Shown piece after piece: positions 6,727-56,165 of a stretch of 64,000 nucleotides of DNA. The notes beneath the pieces were generated by a model. That model did no database searches. It had not been told where the DNA came from and saw only the letters and a list, made by a program, of their open reading frames with translations. The first letter of the stretch is position 1. Every line of letters begins with the position of its first letter. The position numbers and the translations under genes were made by a program. Source of the DNA: Styela clava (Eukaryota); assembly GCF_964204865.1 (NCBI RefSeq), contig NC_135253.1:23312001-23376000 (forward strand). The letters are read 5' to 3'.

Positions 6727-7495
6727 GTCTCGCGTGCCAATTATTATATTATCTAAATAATAGTATTGGGTGTCATAACAACCTGTCCTCATCTCGATTG
6801 CTACCTAGTAACTCTATTACTTTGATAATAAGATCACCAGTTGAAAATAACTAGGTGTAATATAGTTACCATTAACATTAGGCAAACAAATAGTTAATAA
6901 AACGCCACGTACACCTATCTACCTGGCAACCTTTATTATTATTTAATTTATACTCTTATTTATTTTTGTTATCTTCTTCTCTCTTTTATAGCCCTTTCCT
7001 CTCCATCATTTTCTTTCTAACTCTTTTCTTCGTCAATCTGACTCTTTTTCTTCCATTTCTTACCTGCCTGGCCAAGACGGAATACTCGCCACTAGAGGGT
7101 TCAATGAGTGTGCATCAGGGTGCATTTCTCCGAACCCTCCCATGTGGCGGGAAATGTTTCGTCGAGGCCAGGCGTTCTGTTAATCTTTACCTTTTATTTT
7201 TCAGAAAAAGAAAGACCATCTAAAAGCCTCCCCTGCAACAAGTAAGTATAAAAAAGTAAGTATCGGTGGGTTGAGGCCTACTTAAAAAAAAAAAAAAAAA
7301 AAAGTAAGCTAGCGCCCGAGCTGCGGTTCGGTATTTTTTATTGCATTTTCCATACTCCAATTCGTAGAATATTTCAATTCGTTCGTCCTAACCCTCTCTT
7401 ATCTTTTGGCTTTGCGCGAGACACACCGCGGGCGGGCCTCGTTTGTTGTCGCCGACTTCTGCTTCTCGTTTTAGTATTCATTCGTACGCTTTGGC

Positions 7496-7533: not shown

Positions 7534-7584
7534 ATCATTATTGCTGTTTTGATTAAGGTAAGCTAGAGCCCGAGCTGTTGCTCG
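7534..7584 (+). ncRNA. SL RNA gene, variant gamma
   Basis: Exon ATCATTATTGCTGTTTTGATTAAG, donor 7558, hairpin CGAGC..GCTCG, then a T-rich tract. Confidence 0.8.
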
Positions 7585-7706
7585 TAATTTTATACTGCAC
7601 ATTCCAGATCGAAGTGGTTCGCGCTAACCCCTTCGTGACTTCTTATTCTCGCTAGTACGAGACTTCTCGCGAAGTGAACGAGATAACAACGCGACGTGAT
7701 ACATCC

Positions 7707-7721
7707 TTTGTTGTCGCCGAC
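7707..7721 (+). promoter_or_regulatory. Putative distal promoter element (example copy)
   Basis: TTTGTTGTCGCCGAC upstream of alpha and gamma; TTTGATGGTTGCCGAC upstream of beta (7988-8003). Confidence 0.5.
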
Positions 7722-7773
7722 TGACTTCTGCTCCCTTAGATTGTTGTCTTACATACATACATGTCTTGTTGGA

Positions 7774-7795
7774 ATAGATTGTGCAACCGAATGGG
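7774..7795 (+). promoter_or_regulatory. Putative PSE-like element, SL-alpha (example copy)
   Basis: ATAGATTGTGCAACCGAATGGG at -38..-17. Confidence 0.65.
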
Positions 7796-7811
7796 CTACA
7801 AACCAGTGACT

Positions 7812-7857
7812 ATCATTATTCGCTGTATAATTAAGGTAAGTTCTGGAGCCGCGGCTC
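7812..7857 (+). ncRNA. SL RNA gene, variant alpha
   Basis: 24-nt exon, donor 7836, hairpin. Confidence 0.8.
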
Positions 7858-8081
7858 GTTATTTAATATCGCACTCTTCGGTTGGAAGAAAACGCGTTCA
7901 TTTTGTCCACGTTAACCCTTTCGTGACTTGACCTGTCAAAAAACCTTTCCGTGGGACCAACGAGTTAACCCGCGCAGGTGCACTTCGTTTGATGGTTGCC
8001 GACATCGCGGCGAGTCAGGTTTCTGCGTTACTCGCTGTGTATGTCCAGACTGCTCGTCCAAGAACTTCAAATCTTGTGAGC

Positions 8082-8103
8082 ATAGACTGTGCAGCCGAAT
8101 GAG
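8082..8103 (+). promoter_or_regulatory. Putative PSE-like element, SL-beta (example copy)
   Basis: ATAGACTGTGCAGCCGAATGAG at -38..-17. Confidence 0.65.
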
Positions 8104-8119
8104 TCTCAAAGCAATGGCT

Positions 8120-8171
8120 ATCATTATTCGCTATTTGATTAAGGTAAGCTAGCGCCCGAGCTGCGGTTCGG
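8120..8171 (+). ncRNA. SL RNA gene, variant beta
   Basis: Exon ATCATTATTCGCTATTTGATTAAG, whose 3' part closely resembles the Ciona leader ATTCTATTTGAATAAG; donor 8144; hairpin CCGAGC..GTTCGG. Confidence 0.82.
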
Positions 8172-8458
8172 TATTTTTTATTGCATTTTCCATACTCCAA
8201 TTCGTAGAATATTTCAATTCGTTCGTCCTAACCCTCTCTTATCTTTTGGCTTTGCGCGAGACACACCGCGGGCGGGCCTCGTTTGTTGTCGCCGACTTCT
8301 GCTTCTCGTTTTAGTATTCATTCGTACGCTTTGGCATAGATCGTGCAACCGAATGGGCTTCAAAACATTGGAAATCATTATTGCTGTTTTGATTAAGGCA
8401 ACCCCTCACCGGGTTAGGCCCTCGACAGCAACGAAGCAAGAAGAAAAGGAAGAAGAAG

Positions 8459-9937: not shown

Positions 9938-10221
9938 TTATAAGTTAATTCGGACCCCACAAATCAAAATTCTGTAATCTGGACATTTAATTCGGCCTTT
10001 AAACATCGAGCGTAAAACAAACTGCCCAGTTGATGGCATAAAACTCAACTTGATAATACCATCCTACTTATAGCGGGTGTGATGAATGGAAGACTACCTC
10101 TTCATGTGGTATATAAAATGGTGATCTCTATGGCAAAGAGAAGGGATCCATATAACTTCCTTCGGCATAGTCTGGGTATGAAGGCAATTGGGCTGGATTC
10201 CAGACTTTGTCGTTCTGATCC

Positions 10222-10259
<38 letters not shown>

Positions 10260-17298: not shown

Positions 17299-19739
17299 CT
17301 TTGTGTTGTATTGTTTGACTTCTATAGTCTTGGGATTTTATTGCTTCTGAACTACCATAAATGGTAGTTTAAACAGGTAGTTCTTTTGGTATAATAACCT
17401 CCTCTTGTAACAGCAAATAGTTTTTTTCAAAGCCTCTCGTCACTGACTCGCGTCAGAGTTGTTTTCATCGGCAGACAGTTTCCTGTTGTAACATCCGCCA
17501 TGACTACGACACAGCCTTCAACATCAAGGCCTCTTTTTTCAAGCGTCGCTGCCTCAGTTCCTAAGGTAGCCGATGTGAGATGTGTGGACGTCAGCAGAGG
17601 CGAGTCGATCGATGTCGAAACAACTAAAGACATCTCGACCGTTTTGGAATTTTTTAATTTATTTAACACCGTGAATAAACTACGTCCTTTTAGAACCCTA
17701 GTCGGAGGAATTTTTCATATCCGCCAGGGTACTTGGAACTTGACTTTCCAACCCACCGACGGACAACCAACACGGGATAAGTTTCTTTCAAGTGTTGGTG
17801 ATAAACTTGACACCCCACTAGGTGTAATTAAATTTTCCTTGCCTCGTGGTCCAGGGACTCGCATTAGCGTGCGTGGTATTCCCACTGAAGCCACAGTCGA
17901 GCAAATAACAACACTGCTCAACTCTTTTGACTGTGGCAAGGTGCGTCGTGTTTTTAAAATATACCTGCGTAACACCAAGGTGTATAACGGCTACGTACAA
18001 GCCATCATTGATGACTTCGAGAAGTCTAAATTTCCCGATTTCGTCAATGTTGGTGGACTGCGTTGCAAAACATACCTACCTCCGGAACTCTATACCAAAA
18101 CCTGCTTGAATTGCTTTCAAGCAGGTCATCTGGCCAGAGAATGTGTGATGCCCCCGTCCTGCCGTCTTTGCAAGAAATCCGGCCATGTGCAGCGAGGGTG
18201 CACTGACTTCCCTGTAATAACACCTGCAGTGGAACAAAGTAGCAAGCCTCAACTCCAGGTCAACTCTCCTGCCAAGGTTGCTGCAAAGACGACAGGTAGA
18301 TACAGCTTCACCAATATACCATCTGTAGCTGTATCTTCACAGGATCAGCTGAAAAGGCAAAATATTTATAATAAAATGAAGGAAAAACCTGCTGCGGCTG
18401 ATAACTCCAAGTCTCCCAGTCGGGTTAAGGTGGATATACACCCTATTCCGGCTGAAGATCATGATATCTCAGATTCTTTAGAATCTGAAAAATCGAACCT
18501 GGAAAATGAATCAGATGCAGTTGTAGGGTGTAGTAAAATAAATAATCTAGGTAGGAACCCGGAAGATCTTGATGAAGACTGTGAAAAAATTGTAGAACTG
18601 GATAGCCCTCTGGGAGAAGACTATCACAACATAGTCAGACTCTCAGAGGGGTCGGATGAAGAACTTGCGATGTTTCGAAAGAAACTTCGCAGTCACACGA
18701 AGATCAAGGAACCGGGTCCAGAATGGCAGTGTTCCGAAATCGAATGCAGTCCTGTCAAGAGAGACGAAAAAAGAGGTCGGGGGAGCTCTTCATCGGACGC
18801 CTCAATTGTTCTCCCACCTAATAAATCCCGGATTTTTTCCAAATTGCGAGTTGCTAAAAAACTTTAAAAATAATTATTTGATTGGCTTCAATTTCTTTTC
18901 CTACAGTGGATTGGATAATATATATGACAGGCACTTATTTGTGGCAGTATTTTGTGCCCGAAATGTATAGGACCATTTATATTATCATTTGCAATAATTG
19001 AACATCAACTGCGGAGTACTTTCCCATTTTCCGAACTAGTATTTTTTTTTCTCTTTCTCTCTCTATCATCTCGTAACTATGGATCAATATTAAAGATGCC
19101 AAGGCAGCAGCAAGTGACAATAAAATAAAAAATGGTGGAAAGAAGAACTGGGATCATTTAGCGCCCATTTACATCCTAAATCTAAAACAACTACATTGCT
19201 GTAGTATATAACAACTGAATACCTTCATAACGATCTATACCCTGCTCCAGTGAACTATTTGATTCTCAATCATGGGCACTAAATCTGCCTATAATAAATA
19301 TAACAACTTATATTTGTAGAAATATACTAGAACAAATAGCTAAAAAACGCCATATACACCAGATTACTGGCTCTCTTATATTTTTGGTGAAGGTTTCTTC
19401 GTTTATCTCTTATTAATAATTTATTCTTTTTATGTTTTTTTAACTTCTTTGTCCTTCCGTATACTGATTTTCTACTCTTTTTCTGTTATATCTCCTAAAT
19501 TTCTTTTCTATTAGAGGAGACGGACATCACGTGACAGGGAGAGTTGATATGAGTGTGCACCAAGGTGCATTTCTCCCAACTCTCTTCTGTCACGGAAGTG
19601 TTCGTCGAATCTACCCTCTGTTTTCTCCTGGTGTTATTATTTTGCCTTTTTACAGGTATTTACAGGTAACAACATCTACAAGCCTCCCCTGCAATACGTA
19701 AGTATAAAAACAAGGTGAGTATCGGTGGGTCGAGGCCTA

Positions 19740-19786
<47 letters not shown>
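17299..19786 (+). mobile_element. N2 ORF1-only non-autonomous element of lineage A (probably 5'-truncated)
   Basis: A-like ORF1, no ORF2, A-like 3' terminus (TATCGGTGGGTCGAGGCCTACT), poly(A) then GTAAGCT. Confidence 0.88.
17500..18867 (+). CDS. N2 ORF1 (455 aa), homologue of A1/A2 ORF1
   Basis: PLFSSVAASVPKVA, CLNCFQAGHLAREC, CRLCKKSGHVQRGC, KEPGP, RDEKRGR. Confidence 0.92.
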   Translation: MTTTQPSTSRPLFSSVAASVPKVADVRCVDVSRGESIDVETTKDISTVLEFFNLFNTVNKLRPFRTLVGGIFHIRQGTWNLTFQPTDGQPTRDKFLSSVGDKLDTPLGVIKFSLPRGPGTRISVRGIPTEATVEQITTLLNSFDCGKVRRVFKIYLRNTKVYNGYVQAIIDDFEKSKFPDFVNVGGLRCKTYLPPELYTKTCLNCFQAGHLARECVMPPSCRLCKKSGHVQRGCTDFPVITPAVEQSSKPQLQVNSPAKVAAKTTGRYSFTNIPSVAVSSQDQLKRQNIYNKMKEKPAAADNSKSPSRVKVDIHPIPAEDHDISDSLESEKSNLENESDAVVGCSKINNLGRNPEDLDEDCEKIVELDSPLGEDYHNIVRLSEGSDEELAMFRKKLRSHTKIKEPGPEWQCSEIECSPVKRDEKRGRGSSSSDASIVLPPNKSRIFSKLRVAKKL

Positions 19787-24700: not shown

Positions 24701-25228
24701 AACAAGTTCACAAATGCGGAACGATTACTATCCTACCGCATAGTCCGTGAAGGATACATCTTCGGCGACCGCATGCGGGGAATGTCCCTAAGATTCGACC
24801 AAACCGGAGTGCTAAAGATATTGAACTGTAAATTCTGCAAAACCCCTTCCGACAACACGAAGCATCTTATCCAACACTGCAATAAAACTGACTATTATAT
24901 TGGAAAAACTGTAAACTTTATTAGCGACATATTACGTACCCCCATAAAAATCAACAGAGAGCAAATATTTTACAACAGTTATGGTGGCCCACACCAGATA
25001 GCAGTAACTAAATGCTTCGTCCTTTTAAAGAAGAATATAATTGGAACAAAAATCAAACTAGACATACAAAACAAATACCTGGCCCCAACCGATGATAAAA
25101 TAATTCAAAAAACAATAGACAAATTTGCAGAATTTCTAATTACAATGGAATACAAACATACGGACATACAGTTTCTTGGCTTTCCAGCAAATTGGAAAGC
25201 AATCTTAAGTGGGTATTTAAATATGTGA
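21740..25228 (+). CDS. B1 ORF2, APE + RT + Zn finger
   Basis: CVQE, GDFN, RRID, SDH, NWRPI, GIRQGCPLS, YADD, CKFC..H..C; true start may be the ATG at 21749. Confidence 0.96.
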   Translation: MHEMAGMKIISLNSNGVQHRLNDLRNYIGHERPNVLCVQEVHKIDKLLVTQWAEALGYNIFMNTLDKLDKYHTTFKQGTLIMIKSENTNLPTTYAIHIQHRLDSVEINIDRQTIKIFNVYAPAQNGPEKTKFCEKLVVTLKNYIDTYDIIMVGDFNFVLEPIDVLIPRNFKLRPPEKILKKFIQENNIVDTYRRKYPQKQIFTHLTGSQGRRIDNIYNSKNLDHMVSEISHTINTVSDHLLCPQIVLKQAQKIRWGKSVWRNNVLLYDDPTYVRVIKNTYASALNEIQNFESLQLWWDYVKNRIKKVTMAYSKNVANNKRNNLAQLRKNLDKLINEGKRENTLKIENLKSQLKTLSEERNKLDILMANIQTLEENEKPTKTFFARIKKRAKQTTITELRAPNNRATTKEEEIIKLVENFYANLWGEEHQTSEYYQQYYLSLMGTTQISKQDNDGLEQYVTSAEILHTIKQMFNNRSPGMDGLGKEFYVTFWDTIQIQFTQLINNIFSFGPLPKSASIAKVKLLYKKNDQLNLKNWRPITTLNTDYKIISKIIVNRLEPIMDPIISPSQKCSIKSRNMVDIHYNIDAIFRHCQNNNIPGSLVMIDNLKAFDNVSHSFVFNVLQHIGLGCKTLNIIKSMYTDIYSRIDVNGRLTNPITIRRGIRQGCPLSMMLYCLTVEPLARSIQTNSQIKGIKLGAYEHKIDQYADDITFAVRDQISISKIFEELENFKQAAGQQINKEKTEILCITKIALNSISKSPYHQYIKPDCKILGIHFGFKTLEKMWDEIIGLLTRTLNSLKPRNLTWYGKLTAINSLIMSIITFHARVKTISSSNIKTIESVLHKFIWYPAKIEAIKRKHLQLSVASGGIGMIDVKSKVEACKIERIKAFVRGENLNQFWHIEGLYSLGSKIKEINPSLYSNLMPHRNTTPTTWREMLDLYRKIDLTRDVWETARHKHLYQELKSKAPEQYQQIPTINWEEVQLFSNTLRNKFTNAERLLSYRIVREGYIFGDRMRGMSLRFDQTGVLKILNCKFCKTPSDNTKHLIQHCNKTDYYIGKTVNFISDILRTPIKINREQIFYNSYGGPHQIAVTKCFVLLKKNIIGTKIKLDIQNKYLAPTDDKIIQKTIDKFAEFLITMEYKHTDIQFLGFPANWKAILSGYLNM

Positions 25229-25327
25229 CACGATGCTTGAAAAGAACTTTACCACCCAAAGAGGTCGCCCTACCTACATTCACCATAAAAGGGAGCTTAA
25301 ACCTGGTAATACCATCCTCAAATTTTC

Positions 25328-25665
25328 GCGGAAATGATGAATCGGAAGCTTCACGGTGGATGTCATGCTGGATACGTGTTACACGCCTCGCAGTATGTAC
25401 GGAAGCCGGGGGTGGCGGAAGTTGAGCTGTGTTAAACACGGCATTGACGGAAGCCCTGGGCAGACGTCCTGCTATTTGGCACATAGCATGTTACTGATGC
25501 TCGGGGCAGAAGTCTTTGCCTTGCAATACATAGCCGATACGGAAGCCGCCTTAATGTATGACCGCTGCTTACGCAGTGGCATGCTTATGTAGCGTAATAC
25601 CGATATGACTCGGATATGACGTGTCTTTGAGACACTGATCCGAGATTGGAAAAACTCTGATCCGT
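25328..25665 (+). other. Box C/D (kink-turn)-closed structured 3' UTR domain of B1
   Basis: GCGGA-A-ATGATGA (25328-25340) ... CTGA-TCCGT (25657-25665); internal K-turn hairpin 25609-25644. Confidence 0.7.
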
Positions 25666-25666
25666 A

Positions 25667-25711
<45 letters not shown>

Positions 25712-25958
25712 AGAGCCCGAGCTATTGCTCGTTATTTTATACTGCACATTCCAGATCGAAGTGGTTCGCGCTAACTCCTTCGTGACTTCTTATTCTCGCT
25801 AGTACGAGACTTCTCGCGAAGTGAACGAGATAACAACGCGACGTGATACATCCTTTGTTGTCGCCGACTGACTTCTGCTCCCTTAGATTGTTGTCTTACA
25901 TACATACATGTCTTGTTGGAATAGATTGTGCAACCGAATGGGCTACAAACCAGTGACT

Positions 25959-33500: not shown

Positions 33501-33996
33501 TCTCTCGTACCGGATAGCCATAGATGGTTACATATTCGGAGACAGAATGCGGAATATGGGGCTTCGCTACAAAACATCGGGCTACCTTAGAATAATGAAC
33601 TGCAAATTCTGCCAAAAATCAATGGACAATACAAAACATATCTTTCTATCATGTGATAAAGTAGCCAATTATATTTCGGGAATCACCGGAGTACTGAACC
33701 AAATTTGCAATAACGATATTAAAATAACTCGAGAAGAAATAATGTATAATGGATACCAAGGACCCCAGCAACTACTTGTAACAAAATGTTCAGTAATAAT
33801 GAAGGACACCATAATAAAAGAAAAAATAAAGTTGGATATACAAGATAAATACTTCGACCCCAAGGAAGACACAATTCTGGCCAAAACAATTAAAAACCTC
33901 ACGGACTTCATTACTCTCATGGACCATAAATTCGGCAACACTCACTTTCTGGGAATAACTGAAAATTGGAAAATAATTTTAAACGGGTATCTATGA
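30529..33996 (+). CDS. B2 ORF2, APE + RT + Zn finger
   Basis: CVQE, GDFN, RIDRIY, SDH, GIRQGCPLS, YADD, CKFC..H..C. Confidence 0.96.
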   Translation: MAKYKIVSLNANGVQHHLNNIDRFLKREKPEVICVQEAHRVDKDVISQWASDLGYDAYFNTLDKMEKHYTNFRHGTLILAKHTNSTQQTAYTVHIKHRCDSLEIEIDQRTVKIINIYAPAQNGPLKTDFYKLLTSIIGFYCDSTQLLLVGDFNNALESVDVSNTNNFKLRPPEKIFKNFIQCNNLIDTFRNKYPKKQIFTFYFHSNGRRIDRIYNSTDLDSIISTIAHVPNTVSDHLLCPVVTLTQMKKVRWGRGSWRNNVKLYRDPTFNDVIKNTYQAATFGLYNFDTLQEWWDDVKSKIKKQSIAYSINLARNKRNETTLVRKTLLELINEGKQENAVKIVELKMRLRAVEEEQNARDTLIAKMKDLEDGEKPTSTFYERIRKRAKKTTIDKLETDNQTVATDQDEILTTVESFYTNLWGKKSDIQESSQDYYISIMSRTKIADEENTTLESPITEDEIYNAIKYMPDNKSPGLDGLTKEFYITFWNMIKKNFTLLINNIFHFGQLPNSAKTAKVKLIYKKGKETLLKNWRPITTLNTDYKIISRILVKRLESILNNVISKTQKCSLPLRSMEDVHYNTDAIARYCKMNNIPGTLILIDNLKAFDRVNHGFLFKILHQIGISNKAFKVIKSMYTGVKSKVDVNGRLSKAIEIRRGIRQGCPLSMMLYALSTEPFARSIIFNSNIHGIKLGTFEHKLDQYADDTTFAVRDNTSINEIFKELHRFETATGQKTNIEKTQILCLTRSSYKSTYNSPYQTYIKHNTKILGIHFGNKGMDKIWQELENKIIRTLNYVKLRNLTWHGKQIIINSLIMSIVIFHARVKPIPPKTVNKIQGACFKFLWSPAKVEAIGRKTLQRMRSEGGFNMIDLNAKIKACLVEKMRVLALGGPLTQFWHLEALYALGSRIRLVNRDLYTNSMPHSPTVPKQWKHILDTFKKLDFTKNDWDLARHKNIYHKLKAIDSNQQQLDLNWEEIHLLTKTYRTKFTNTERVLSYRIAIDGYIFGDRMRNMGLRYKTSGYLRIMNCKFCQKSMDNTKHIFLSCDKVANYISGITGVLNQICNNDIKITREEIMYNGYQGPQQLLVTKCSVIMKDTIIKEKIKLDIQDKYFDPKEDTILAKTIKNLTDFITLMDHKFGNTHFLGITENWKIILNGYL

Positions 33997-34131
33997 AACT
34001 GATAACTTTCTTCGTTTTAACAAAGTAAAATTACGAACAAACTCAACAACCATAAATGGTAGCCCAATAATAACGACAAAACCCGCAGAAAAACACGATT
34101 TTAACCTCGATAATACCATCCACAACTTTCC

Positions 34132-34470
34132 ACGGAAATGATGAATCGGAAGCTTCACGGTGGATGTCAGTCTGTGTGCGTGTTACACGTCCACACAGGT
34201 TGTACGGAAGCCGGGGGTGGCGGAAGTTGAGCTGTGCTAAGCATGGCATTGACAGAAGCCCTGGGCAGACGTGCTGCTATTTGGCACATAGCATGTACTG
34301 ATGCCCGGGGCCGAAGTCTTTGCCTCGCAATGCATAGTGAATACCAAAGCCGCCTTATCGATATGACCGCTGCTTACGCAGTGGCATGCTTATGGAGCGT
34401 AATACCGATATGACTCGGATATGACGTGTCTTTATGACACTGATCCGAGACTGGAAAAACTCTGATCCGT
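34132..34470 (+). other. Box C/D (kink-turn)-closed structured 3' UTR domain of B2
   Basis: ACGGA-A-ATGATGA (34132-34144) ... CTGA-TCCGT (34462-34470). Confidence 0.7.
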
Positions 34471-34473
34471 AAG

Positions 34474-34514
<41 letters not shown>

Positions 34515-40764: not shown

Positions 40765-41329
40765 GTCTCGCGTGCCAATTATTATATTATCTAAATAATA
40801 GTATTGGGTGTCATAACAACCTGTCCTCATCTCGATTGCTACCTAGTAACTATATTACTTTGATAATAAGATCACCAGTTGAATAAAACTAGGTGTAATA
40901 TAGTTATCATTAACATTAGGCAAACAAATAGTTAATAAAACGCCACATACACCTACCTACCTGGCAACCTTTATTATTATTATTATTATTATTTAATTTA
41001 TACTCTTGATTATTTTTGTTATCTTCTTCTCTCTTTTATAGCCCTTTCCTCTCTATCATTTTCTTTCTAACTCTTTTCTTCGTCAATCTGACTCTTTTTC
41101 TTCCATATCTTACCTGCCTGGCCAAGACGGAATACTCGCCACTAGAGGGTTCAATGAGTGTGCATCAGGGTGCATTTCTCCGAACCCTCCCATGTGGCGG
41201 GAAATGTTTCGTCGAGGCCAGGCGTTCTGTTAATCTTTACCTTTTATTTTTCAGAAAAAGAAAGACCATCTAAAAGCCTCCCCTGCAACAAGTAAGTATA
41301 AAAAAGTAAGTATCGGTGGGTTGAGGCCT

Positions 41330-41362
<33 letters not shown>

Positions 41363-41364
41363 TG

Positions 41365-41404
<40 letters not shown>

Positions 41405-46858: not shown

Positions 46859-47447
46859 ATCATCTCGCGTGCCTGATAACTGCTGAGGTATAATGAACCA
46901 ACATCTATAACCTACCTCCATTGCTACATAATGCTGTAGTACTCCTCCAATACTTATCCCAACCTAAATATTGTTAGTATAATAAAATCTGGGGTAACAC
47001 AGGAACATGATAATTAATAAAGCGAATTATAACGCCACGCACCTAACTGGCTACTTTATTATCATTTAATTTATGATCTCACTTCTTTTTTATTATTAAT
47101 TTCTTCACCCTTCTTTTATAACCCTTTCTCTCCATCATTTTCTTTCTAATCCCTTTACTTCGTCATTCTGACTCTTTCTCTTCTATTTCCTTTTTGCCTG
47201 GCCAAAACGAAATACTCGCCACTAGAGGGTTCAATGAGTGTGCATCAGGGTGCATTTCTCCGAACCCTCACATGTGGCGGGAAATATTTTGTGGCGGTCA
47301 GGCGTTCTGTTAACTGTCTCCTATATTTTTCAGAAAAAGAAAGACCATCTACAAGCCTCCCCTGCAACAAGTAAGTATTAAAAGGTAAGTACCGGTGGGT
47401 TGAGGCCTACCATAAAAAAAAAAAAAAAAAAAAAAATAAAAATAAAA

Positions 47448-47482
<35 letters not shown>

Positions 47483-55574: not shown

Positions 55575-56128
55575 GTCTCGCGTGCCAATTATTATATTAT
55601 CTAAATAATAGTATTGGGTGTCATAACAACCTGTCCTCATCTCGATTGCTACCTAGTAACTCTATTACTTTGATAATAAGATCACCAGTTGAAAATAACT
55701 AGGTGTAATATAGTTACCATTAACATTAGGCAAACAAATAGTTAATAAAACGCCACATACACCTATCTACCTGGCAACCTTTATTATTATTTAATTTATA
55801 CTCTTATTTATTTTTGTTATCTTCTTCTCTCTTTTATAGCCCTTTCCTCTCCATCATTTTCTTTCTAACTCTTTTCTTCGTCAATCTGACTCTTTTTCTT
55901 CCATTTCTTACCTGCCTGGCCAAGACGGAATACTCGCCACTAGAGGGTTCAATGAGTGTGCATCAGGGTGCATTTCTCCGAACCCTCCCATGTGGCGGGA
56001 AATGTTTCGTCGAGGCCAGGCGTTCTGTTAATCTTTACCTTTTATTTTTCAGAAAAAGAAAGACCATCTAAAAGCCTCCCCTGCAACAAGTAAGTATAAA
56101 AAAGTAAGTATCGGTGGGTTGAGGCCTA

Positions 56129-56165
<37 letters not shown>

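Follow-up and report, generated by a model that had tools for sequence, protein, structure and literature searches.

The window analyzed is a 64,000-nt stretch of the genome of the sea squirt Styela clava (contig NC_135253.1, positions 23,312,001 to 23,376,000; G000:C4:23312001-23376000, where G000 stands for this 377-Mb genome and C numbers for its contigs). All long ORFs of the window lie on the plus strand, and the window is a head-to-tail stack of poly(A)-ended non-LTR elements. The ORF2 of these elements carries an APE endonuclease (Exo_endo_phos) and a reverse transcriptase (RVT_1), while related ORF1s carry CCHC knuckles (zf-CCHC). The nearest database relatives of ORF2 are only 29% identical and are L1-like with zf-RVT; the 3′ ends of these foreign relatives were not read. 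Between the elements lie spliced-leader (SL) RNA genes, with three gene variants in a row at 7534-8397 (exon ...GAUUAAG, intron GUAAGC..., with an Sm-like AAUUUUA downstream), and every element in the window sits exactly at this exon-intron junction, in the sense orientation. After the B1 and B2 poly(A) tails (from 25710 and 34513, respectively), the SL intron resumes without its first five bases (GUAAG), while GUAA(U/G) precedes the tail; the ORF1-only elements, on the other hand, are followed by an intact GUAAGC. The nick position or the end-joining differs between families. By domain content and by insertion at one fixed site in multicopy genes, the carriers correspond to L1/Tx1-like target-specific LINEs, although their clade placement was not examined with a tree.

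The ORF2 of element B1 ends at 25228 and its poly(A) starts at 25669; the ORF2 of element B2 ends at 33996 and its poly(A) starts at 34474. Between these points the two elements share a 3′-terminal domain of 338 nt (25328-25665 in B1, 34132-34470 in B2), whose parts, together with related features of the window, are as follows.

25307-25317, plus strand: upstream box UAAUACCAUCC, 10 nt 5′ of the terminal stem, where B1/B2 similarity begins; a second copy (UAAUACC) lies at 25595-25601, ahead of the internal hairpin.
25328-25332, plus strand: 5′ strand of the terminal stem (GCGGA; ACGGA in B2), pairing with 25661-25665.
25333-25340, plus strand: 3-nt bulge AAU (25333-25335) plus GAUGA (25336-25340), together forming box C (AUGAUGA at 25334-25340).
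25341-25608, plus strand: structured core, with helix GCUUCA (25348)/UGUAGC (25588), nested hairpins, five CGGAAG motifs (25343, 25400, 25416, 25448 and 25540) and one CAGAAG (25507).
25609-25644, plus strand: internal kink-turn-type hairpin, with C stem CUCGGA/UCCGAG, bulge UAU, G.A and A.G, C.U, NC stem GUGUC/GACAC and a pentaloop.
25657-25665, plus strand: box D CUGA (25657-25660) plus the 3′ strand of the terminal stem, UCCGU (25661-25665).
25666-25709, plus strand: variable junction nucleotides (AAU, 25666-25668) and a 41-nt poly(A), with no AAUAAA or AUUAAA upstream.
34111-34473, plus strand: B2 copy of the same module, with stem ACGGA at 34132-34136, GAUGA at 34140-34144, CUGA at 34462-34465 and UCCGU at 34466-34470; junction nucleotides lie at 34471-34473 and poly(A) runs from 34474 to 34512.
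10073-10223, plus strand: ORF1-only (N1/“H”) element with the same ends (GCGGG-UGU-GAUGA ... CUGA-UCCGU) around a different, shorter core of about 150 nt; further copies end at 657, 12886, 28425 and 50106, and the copy ending just before 15658 has a CUAA D box.

An earlier note, made from the sequence alone, described the terminal C/D pair and the internal kink-turn of this domain and claimed that the block is more conserved between B1 and B2 than their ORFs. Each of these observations was confirmed. All the motifs it described are present, and the internal hairpin of B2 differs from that of B1 only in the loop. From the sharp boundary at 25307 to the end, B1 and B2 are 89.8% identical, compared with 62.0% for ORF2 nucleotides (55% for amino acids), 56.5% for ORF1 nucleotides, 46.5% for the stop-proximal UTR just upstream and 41.6% for the 5′ UTR. 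The 351-nt RNA folds to -131 kcal/mol, with a z-score of -5.5 against dinucleotide shuffles, and the GCGGA/UCCGU pairing closes the fold. The ORF1-only domain, in contrast, is not unusually stable (z-score of -0.5). An Sm-like site, AAAUUUUCG, which precedes the B1 stem, is not conserved.

To determine whether the C/D arrangement could have arisen by chance, we scanned both strands of the whole window for a stem of at least 4 bp, a 3-nt bulge whose last two bases start RUGAUGA, and CUGA 40-450 nt downstream followed by the complementary stem strand. Nine hits were obtained, all of them on the plus strand and all located at the 3′ ends of B1, B2 and the ORF1-only elements, directly before poly(A). 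Shuffled windows gave on average 0.25 hits for a stem of 5 bp or more. Lineage A elements of the same window (ORF2 40% identical to B1) end in a different tail with twin AAGUAAGUA motifs and GGUGGGUUGAGGCCUACUU (7185-7303, 19700-19786, 41300-41400, 47390-47478 and 56100-56161) and have no C/D motif.

We next searched the genome with TCTGATCCGT followed by A10, allowing up to 2 mismatches. The search retrieved 184 matches on many chromosomes, against 10 for the reversed control. Eighty loci were read (L numbers below denote such loci and the families they represent), which yielded 60 unique domain copies in 16 clusters at 88% identity, with lengths of 140-477 nt; one of these copies (L076) is a chance match. 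In the true copies the stem core CGGA/UCCG never changes, while the outer pair is A-U (23), G-C (10) or G.U (about 21) and never A.C. The bulge fits N-R-U (AAU, UGU, AGU, CGU, UAU), which is exactly the RU of RUGAUGA, with one AAC found in a decayed copy. The box reads GAUGA in 56 of 59 true unique copies, where box C is AUGAUGA or GUGAUGA, and the variants GAAGA and GACGA change only the U.U position and keep both GA dinucleotides. Box D is CUGA, except for one CUAA. The upstream box AAUACCAUC lies 8-14 nt before the stem in nearly all families, and the ORF1-only elements of the window also keep the upstream box, the stem, box C, box D and UCCGU. The modules sit behind ORF2 C-termini that are 31-55% identical to B1, which is as far from B1 as lineage A, or further. 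One copy of 195 nt (L068, G000:C6:20054900-20055380) starts 2 nt before its terminal stem, directly behind another copy's poly(A); it could be a retroposed processed C/D-only RNA or a chance truncation. A search of metagenomes for the D'...D pattern gave 120 matches, none of which had a poly(A) or the 5′ strand of the hairpin, and all are therefore attributed to chance.

On 24 close copies, covariation in the secondary structure is sparse. On 25 copies spanning more families, RNAalifold predicts 81 pairs, 19 of which show compensatory double changes, and 96.5% of cells are paired; sliding the 3′ partners by 1-3 columns gives 3-6 such pairs and 30-44% of cells paired. The terminal stem closes both the minimum free energy and the consensus folds. 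An alternative helix in which RNAalifold paired UCGGA with UCUGA was rejected, since it is not kept in the ORF1-only, L040 or L080 families. The internal hairpin, tested on 31 sequences, is 95% paired, against 24-47% when slid; three pairs have changes on both sides (for example, U-A to A-U and G-C to A-U), the GA/GA core is invariant, and the bulge varies as N-R-Y. Both motifs thus have, at the sequence level, the Watson-Crick C stem, 3-nt bulge, tandem G.A/A.G pairs and NC stem of a kink-turn, the kinked geometry itself not having been measured. The CGGAAG motif occurs five times in 340 nt, where about 0.08 is expected. The copies at 25400-25540 and the CAGAAG sit in or opposite GGAA/GAAG purine-purine internal loops, while the one at 25343 lies at the start of the GCUUCA helix. 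In the consensus fold, most of these motifs face each other across internal loops (GGAA/GGAA, CGGAA/xGAAG, GGAU/GGAA) between covarying helices, which means runs of purine-purine pairs whose partner protein or tertiary role is not known. The last 70 nt repeat the plan of the whole domain in miniature (UAAUACC, spacer, CGGA, NRU, GA ... UGA, UCCG), which suggests growth by nested duplication.

The earlier note had itself named a recent 3′ UTR swap without covariation as an outcome that would overturn its reading, and domain and ORF2 identities were compared among families. Module swapping does occur. Domain identity to B1 stays at 82-93% while ORF2 identity runs from 33% to 96%, and it is near 90% across ORF2 identities of 39-96%. 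Locus L009 (L009:1519-1856; G000:C5:8676369-8676727) has an ORF2 96% identical to B1, yet its domain is a mosaic, B1-like in the 5′ part and B2-like in the 3′ part, which points to recombination within the module. It follows that 3′ modules move between families, probably by template switching, and that the high identity of the core partly reflects this exchange rather than constraint. However, since the exchange coexists with covariation and with conserved boxes on unalignable cores, it explains the spread of the module and does not refute the finding.

No AAUAAA or AUUAAA is present in the last 45 nt of any of 60 copies. Poly(A) (9-94 nt in genomic copies) begins 0-10 nt after the stem whatever the insertion site. 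Copies that are 99-100% identical in sequence differ in the few A/U-rich nucleotides between UCCG(U) and the pure A run (AAU, AAAAAU, none, AUU, AACU). These nucleotides lie on the element side of the tail, so they were in the RNA template, and their variation suggests heterogeneous tailing of the RNA. We infer that this fits an RNA end set at a protected stem and then tailed anew in each event and does not fit signal-directed cleavage. The insertion sites found for the different subfamilies are SL-RNA genes of several types and a site just upstream of the histone H3 start codon. The latter is used by a subfamily (L046:1511-1680, also L047, L049 and L029; G000:C8:7.3-7.9 Mb) inserted in the H3 5′ UTR a few bases before the start codon, where the flank translates to MARTKQTARKSTGGKAPRK...; its ORF2 is 39% identical to B1, but its 3′ domain is 82-89% identical. 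A suspected tRNA gene target beside L012 was not confirmed. Genes of the snRNA and histone type use 3′ processing that is not polyadenylation. Contigs (Logan) from three runs whose RNA status is a guess cover 25391-25659, which is compatible with expression but shows neither the ends nor the level of an RNA.

The earlier note interpreted the domain as a captured or mimicked C/D sno/scaRNA forming the 3′ end of the retrotransposon, an interpretation that our analysis supports only in part: the 3′ end is a conserved, structured RNA under selection, with a canonical terminal C/D motif and an internal kink-turn-type hairpin, but capture is not supported and “mimicked” fits better. Comparison with Rfam, one of the checks proposed in advance, gave no match for the whole window at gathering score or for 25200-25720 at E<=10. 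A search for a host donor likewise revealed about 45 true U3 genes scoring 130 bits, about 40 of them in a tandem array with a spacing of roughly 1.3 kb (G000:C2:9.60-9.67 Mb, L081-L084), with no similarity to the module beyond the box motifs. The sequences upstream of the D boxes, which the note had also proposed to test for complementarity, were examined over the 18 nt before D and D'; they differ between families and show no complementarity to 18S and 28S rRNA, U3 or three SL RNAs above that of shuffled guides (best run of 7 nt against a mean of 7.4 for the B-type); a single 12-nt run in family L032 is within multiple-testing noise, and U1, U2, U4, U5 and U6 were not included. Finally, the box order is C ... 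C'-like (25616), D' (25635) ... D, the internal pair forming its own hairpin, and not the C-D'-C'-D order of snoRNAs.

Our best reading, held with moderate confidence, is that this is the 3′-terminal RNA module of a clade of target-specific L1/Tx1-like LINEs and of their ORF1-only derivatives, a snoRNP-mimicking or convergent handle that also serves as the reverse transcriptase recognition site and is not a working methylation guide. What the analysis demonstrates is a folded RNA supported by covariation, whose ends are joined by a 5-bp stem flanked by consensus boxes C and D that satisfy all sequence rules of a box C/D kink-turn, which lies 0-10 nt before the poly(A), has a second kink-turn hairpin just upstream of box D and repeated GGAA/GAAG loops in the core, and is shared by autonomous and non-autonomous elements. 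The remainder is inference. In this view, the kink-turns would recruit the host protein Snu13/15.5K, possibly with Nop56/58 and fibrillarin, giving a snoRNP-like cap that would fix and protect the 3′ end and keep the RNA nuclear; since the elements lack a poly(A) signal and appear to be transcribed from SL-RNA, snRNA or histone type promoters, which do not use normal polyadenylation, an A-rich tail would then be added by a non-canonical route. The same closed end would be recognized by the reverse transcriptase of the element to start target-primed reverse transcription, which would explain why ORF1-only elements and very divergent autonomous families keep these ends while the core varies. Protein binding, RNA processing, accumulation of a discrete non-polyadenylated RNA and a requirement of the tail in cis for reverse transcription were not assayed. 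Moreover, four of the five terminal stem pairs never vary and therefore say nothing about pairing, and mature snoRNAs do not carry long A tails such as those of the genomic copies.

The main rival, possible but less favored, is that the module is purely the binding site of the LINE's own ORF2 (or ORF1) protein, with a convergent resemblance to box C/D and no involvement of host snoRNP proteins. The invariance of CGGA/UCCG and of the upstream box AAUACCAUC in sequence, not just in pairing, fits such sequence-specific recognition, as do the sharing of the ends with non-autonomous partners, the polyadenylation of the copies and the absence of a detected guide function. However, the full snoRNA consensus is kept, and not only the minimal G.A/A.G pairs (R and U in the bulge, the U.U position and the G-C closing pair of GAUGA/CUGA), and it is kept twice in the domain; in addition, the lack of any poly(A) signal needs another mechanism of 3′ end formation. 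A captured host snoRNA or scaRNA still released as a guide for rRNA, snRNA or SL RNA is unlikely: the canonical boxes with a terminal stem, the contigs from probable RNA runs and the truncated copy L068 speak for it, but the results described above speak against it, the size of 140-477 nt is atypical, and a single boundary-truncated copy is within chance.

It is also unlikely that the module acts at the DNA level, with the CGGAAG motifs serving as ETS-type sites that make the 3′ end a promoter or enhancer for the next unit of the head-to-tail arrays. CGGAAGT does match the ETS core, and Drosophila HeT-A has a 3′ promoter. Yet most of the motifs lie opposite each other, or opposite xGAAG strands that lack the GGAA core, in internal loops flanked by covarying helices, which only an RNA-level constraint explains, and short families (L080, L032, ORF1-only) lack them but keep the C/D ends. 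Least likely is a swap or gene conversion between B1 and B2 with no functional meaning, for which the near-constant domain identity and the L009 mosaic could be cited. It is already contradicted by the compensatory changes and by the retention of the same ends on unalignable cores in families with ORF2 31-33% identical (L032, L056), in further short-core families (L080, L077) and in ORF1-only elements; swapping does not explain why the boxes are kept.

A more far-reaching possibility, not excluded by the evidence but tentative, is that a whole clade of site-specific LINEs has adopted a box C/D snoRNP domain as the biogenesis and trafficking handle of its RNA, as telomerase RNAs have done with H/ACA or C/D domains. 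The handle would replace polyadenylation signals for elements transcribed from snRNA-type or histone promoters and would carry the RNP to Cajal or histone-locus bodies, where its target genes (SL RNA, snRNA, histone) are clustered. If host snoRNP proteins do bind the module, this would be the first autonomous retrotransposon known to use snoRNP assembly for 3′ end formation, stability or nuclear routing, and a natural parallel to telomerase RNAs, which attach a snoRNP domain to a reverse-transcriptase template. It would also offer a concrete answer to the question of how LINEs that ride on SL-RNA, snRNA or histone promoters, and hence use transcription systems uncoupled from cleavage and polyadenylation, make a stable RNA with a defined 3′ end. 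The many young, nearly identical copies and the natural series of cores between conserved ends make the system easy to test, and the module is a compact candidate RNA handle with two kink-turns.

The statement of the earlier note that no precedent exists is only partly right. Word searches of open-access text found no paper describing a LINE with a C/D-type 3′ end, but related systems exist. As in box C/D snoRNAs, scaRNAs and U3-type snoRNAs, boxes C (RUGAUGA) and D (CUGA) are brought together by a terminal stem of 4-5 bp and, as in U3, there is a second internal kink-turn on a hairpin (B/C-like topology); the module, however, is part of a 6-kb polyadenylated LINE RNA, and its core differs between families. 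The nearest functional parallel is the C/D snoRNA-like domain of kinetoplastid telomerase RNA (Gupta et al. 2013; PMC10061497), where the RNA template of a reverse transcriptase carries a C/D domain in place of other biogenesis domains. In Trypanosoma brucei that domain has been shown experimentally to bind NOP58, NOP56 and fibrillarin, whereas binding is only inferred here, and the RNA is a cellular telomerase RNA and not a mobile element. In stringent-type LINE 3′ tails shared with partner SINEs (Kajikawa and Okada 2002, as cited in PMC4494074), a conserved terminal structure directly before the tail is likewise shared by autonomous elements and by non-autonomous ones that borrow their reverse transcriptase, but the known tails are simple stem-loops, while this one is a large closed domain built on snoRNA-type kink-turns. 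Mammalian snoRTs (PMC1687206) and platypus snoRTEs (Schmitz et al. 2008, as cited in PMC2832892) also combine a box C/D RNA with LINE-mediated retroposition; there, a host snoRNA is the passenger, a SINE-like element mobilized by a LINE, whereas here the C/D module belongs to the autonomous LINE itself and shows no guide function. In sno-lncRNAs and SPA lncRNAs, a snoRNP at an RNA end blocks exonucleases and defines that end without normal processing; those are host lncRNAs flanked by real snoRNAs, while here the cap would sit at the 3′ end of a retrotransposon RNA and be followed by an A tail.
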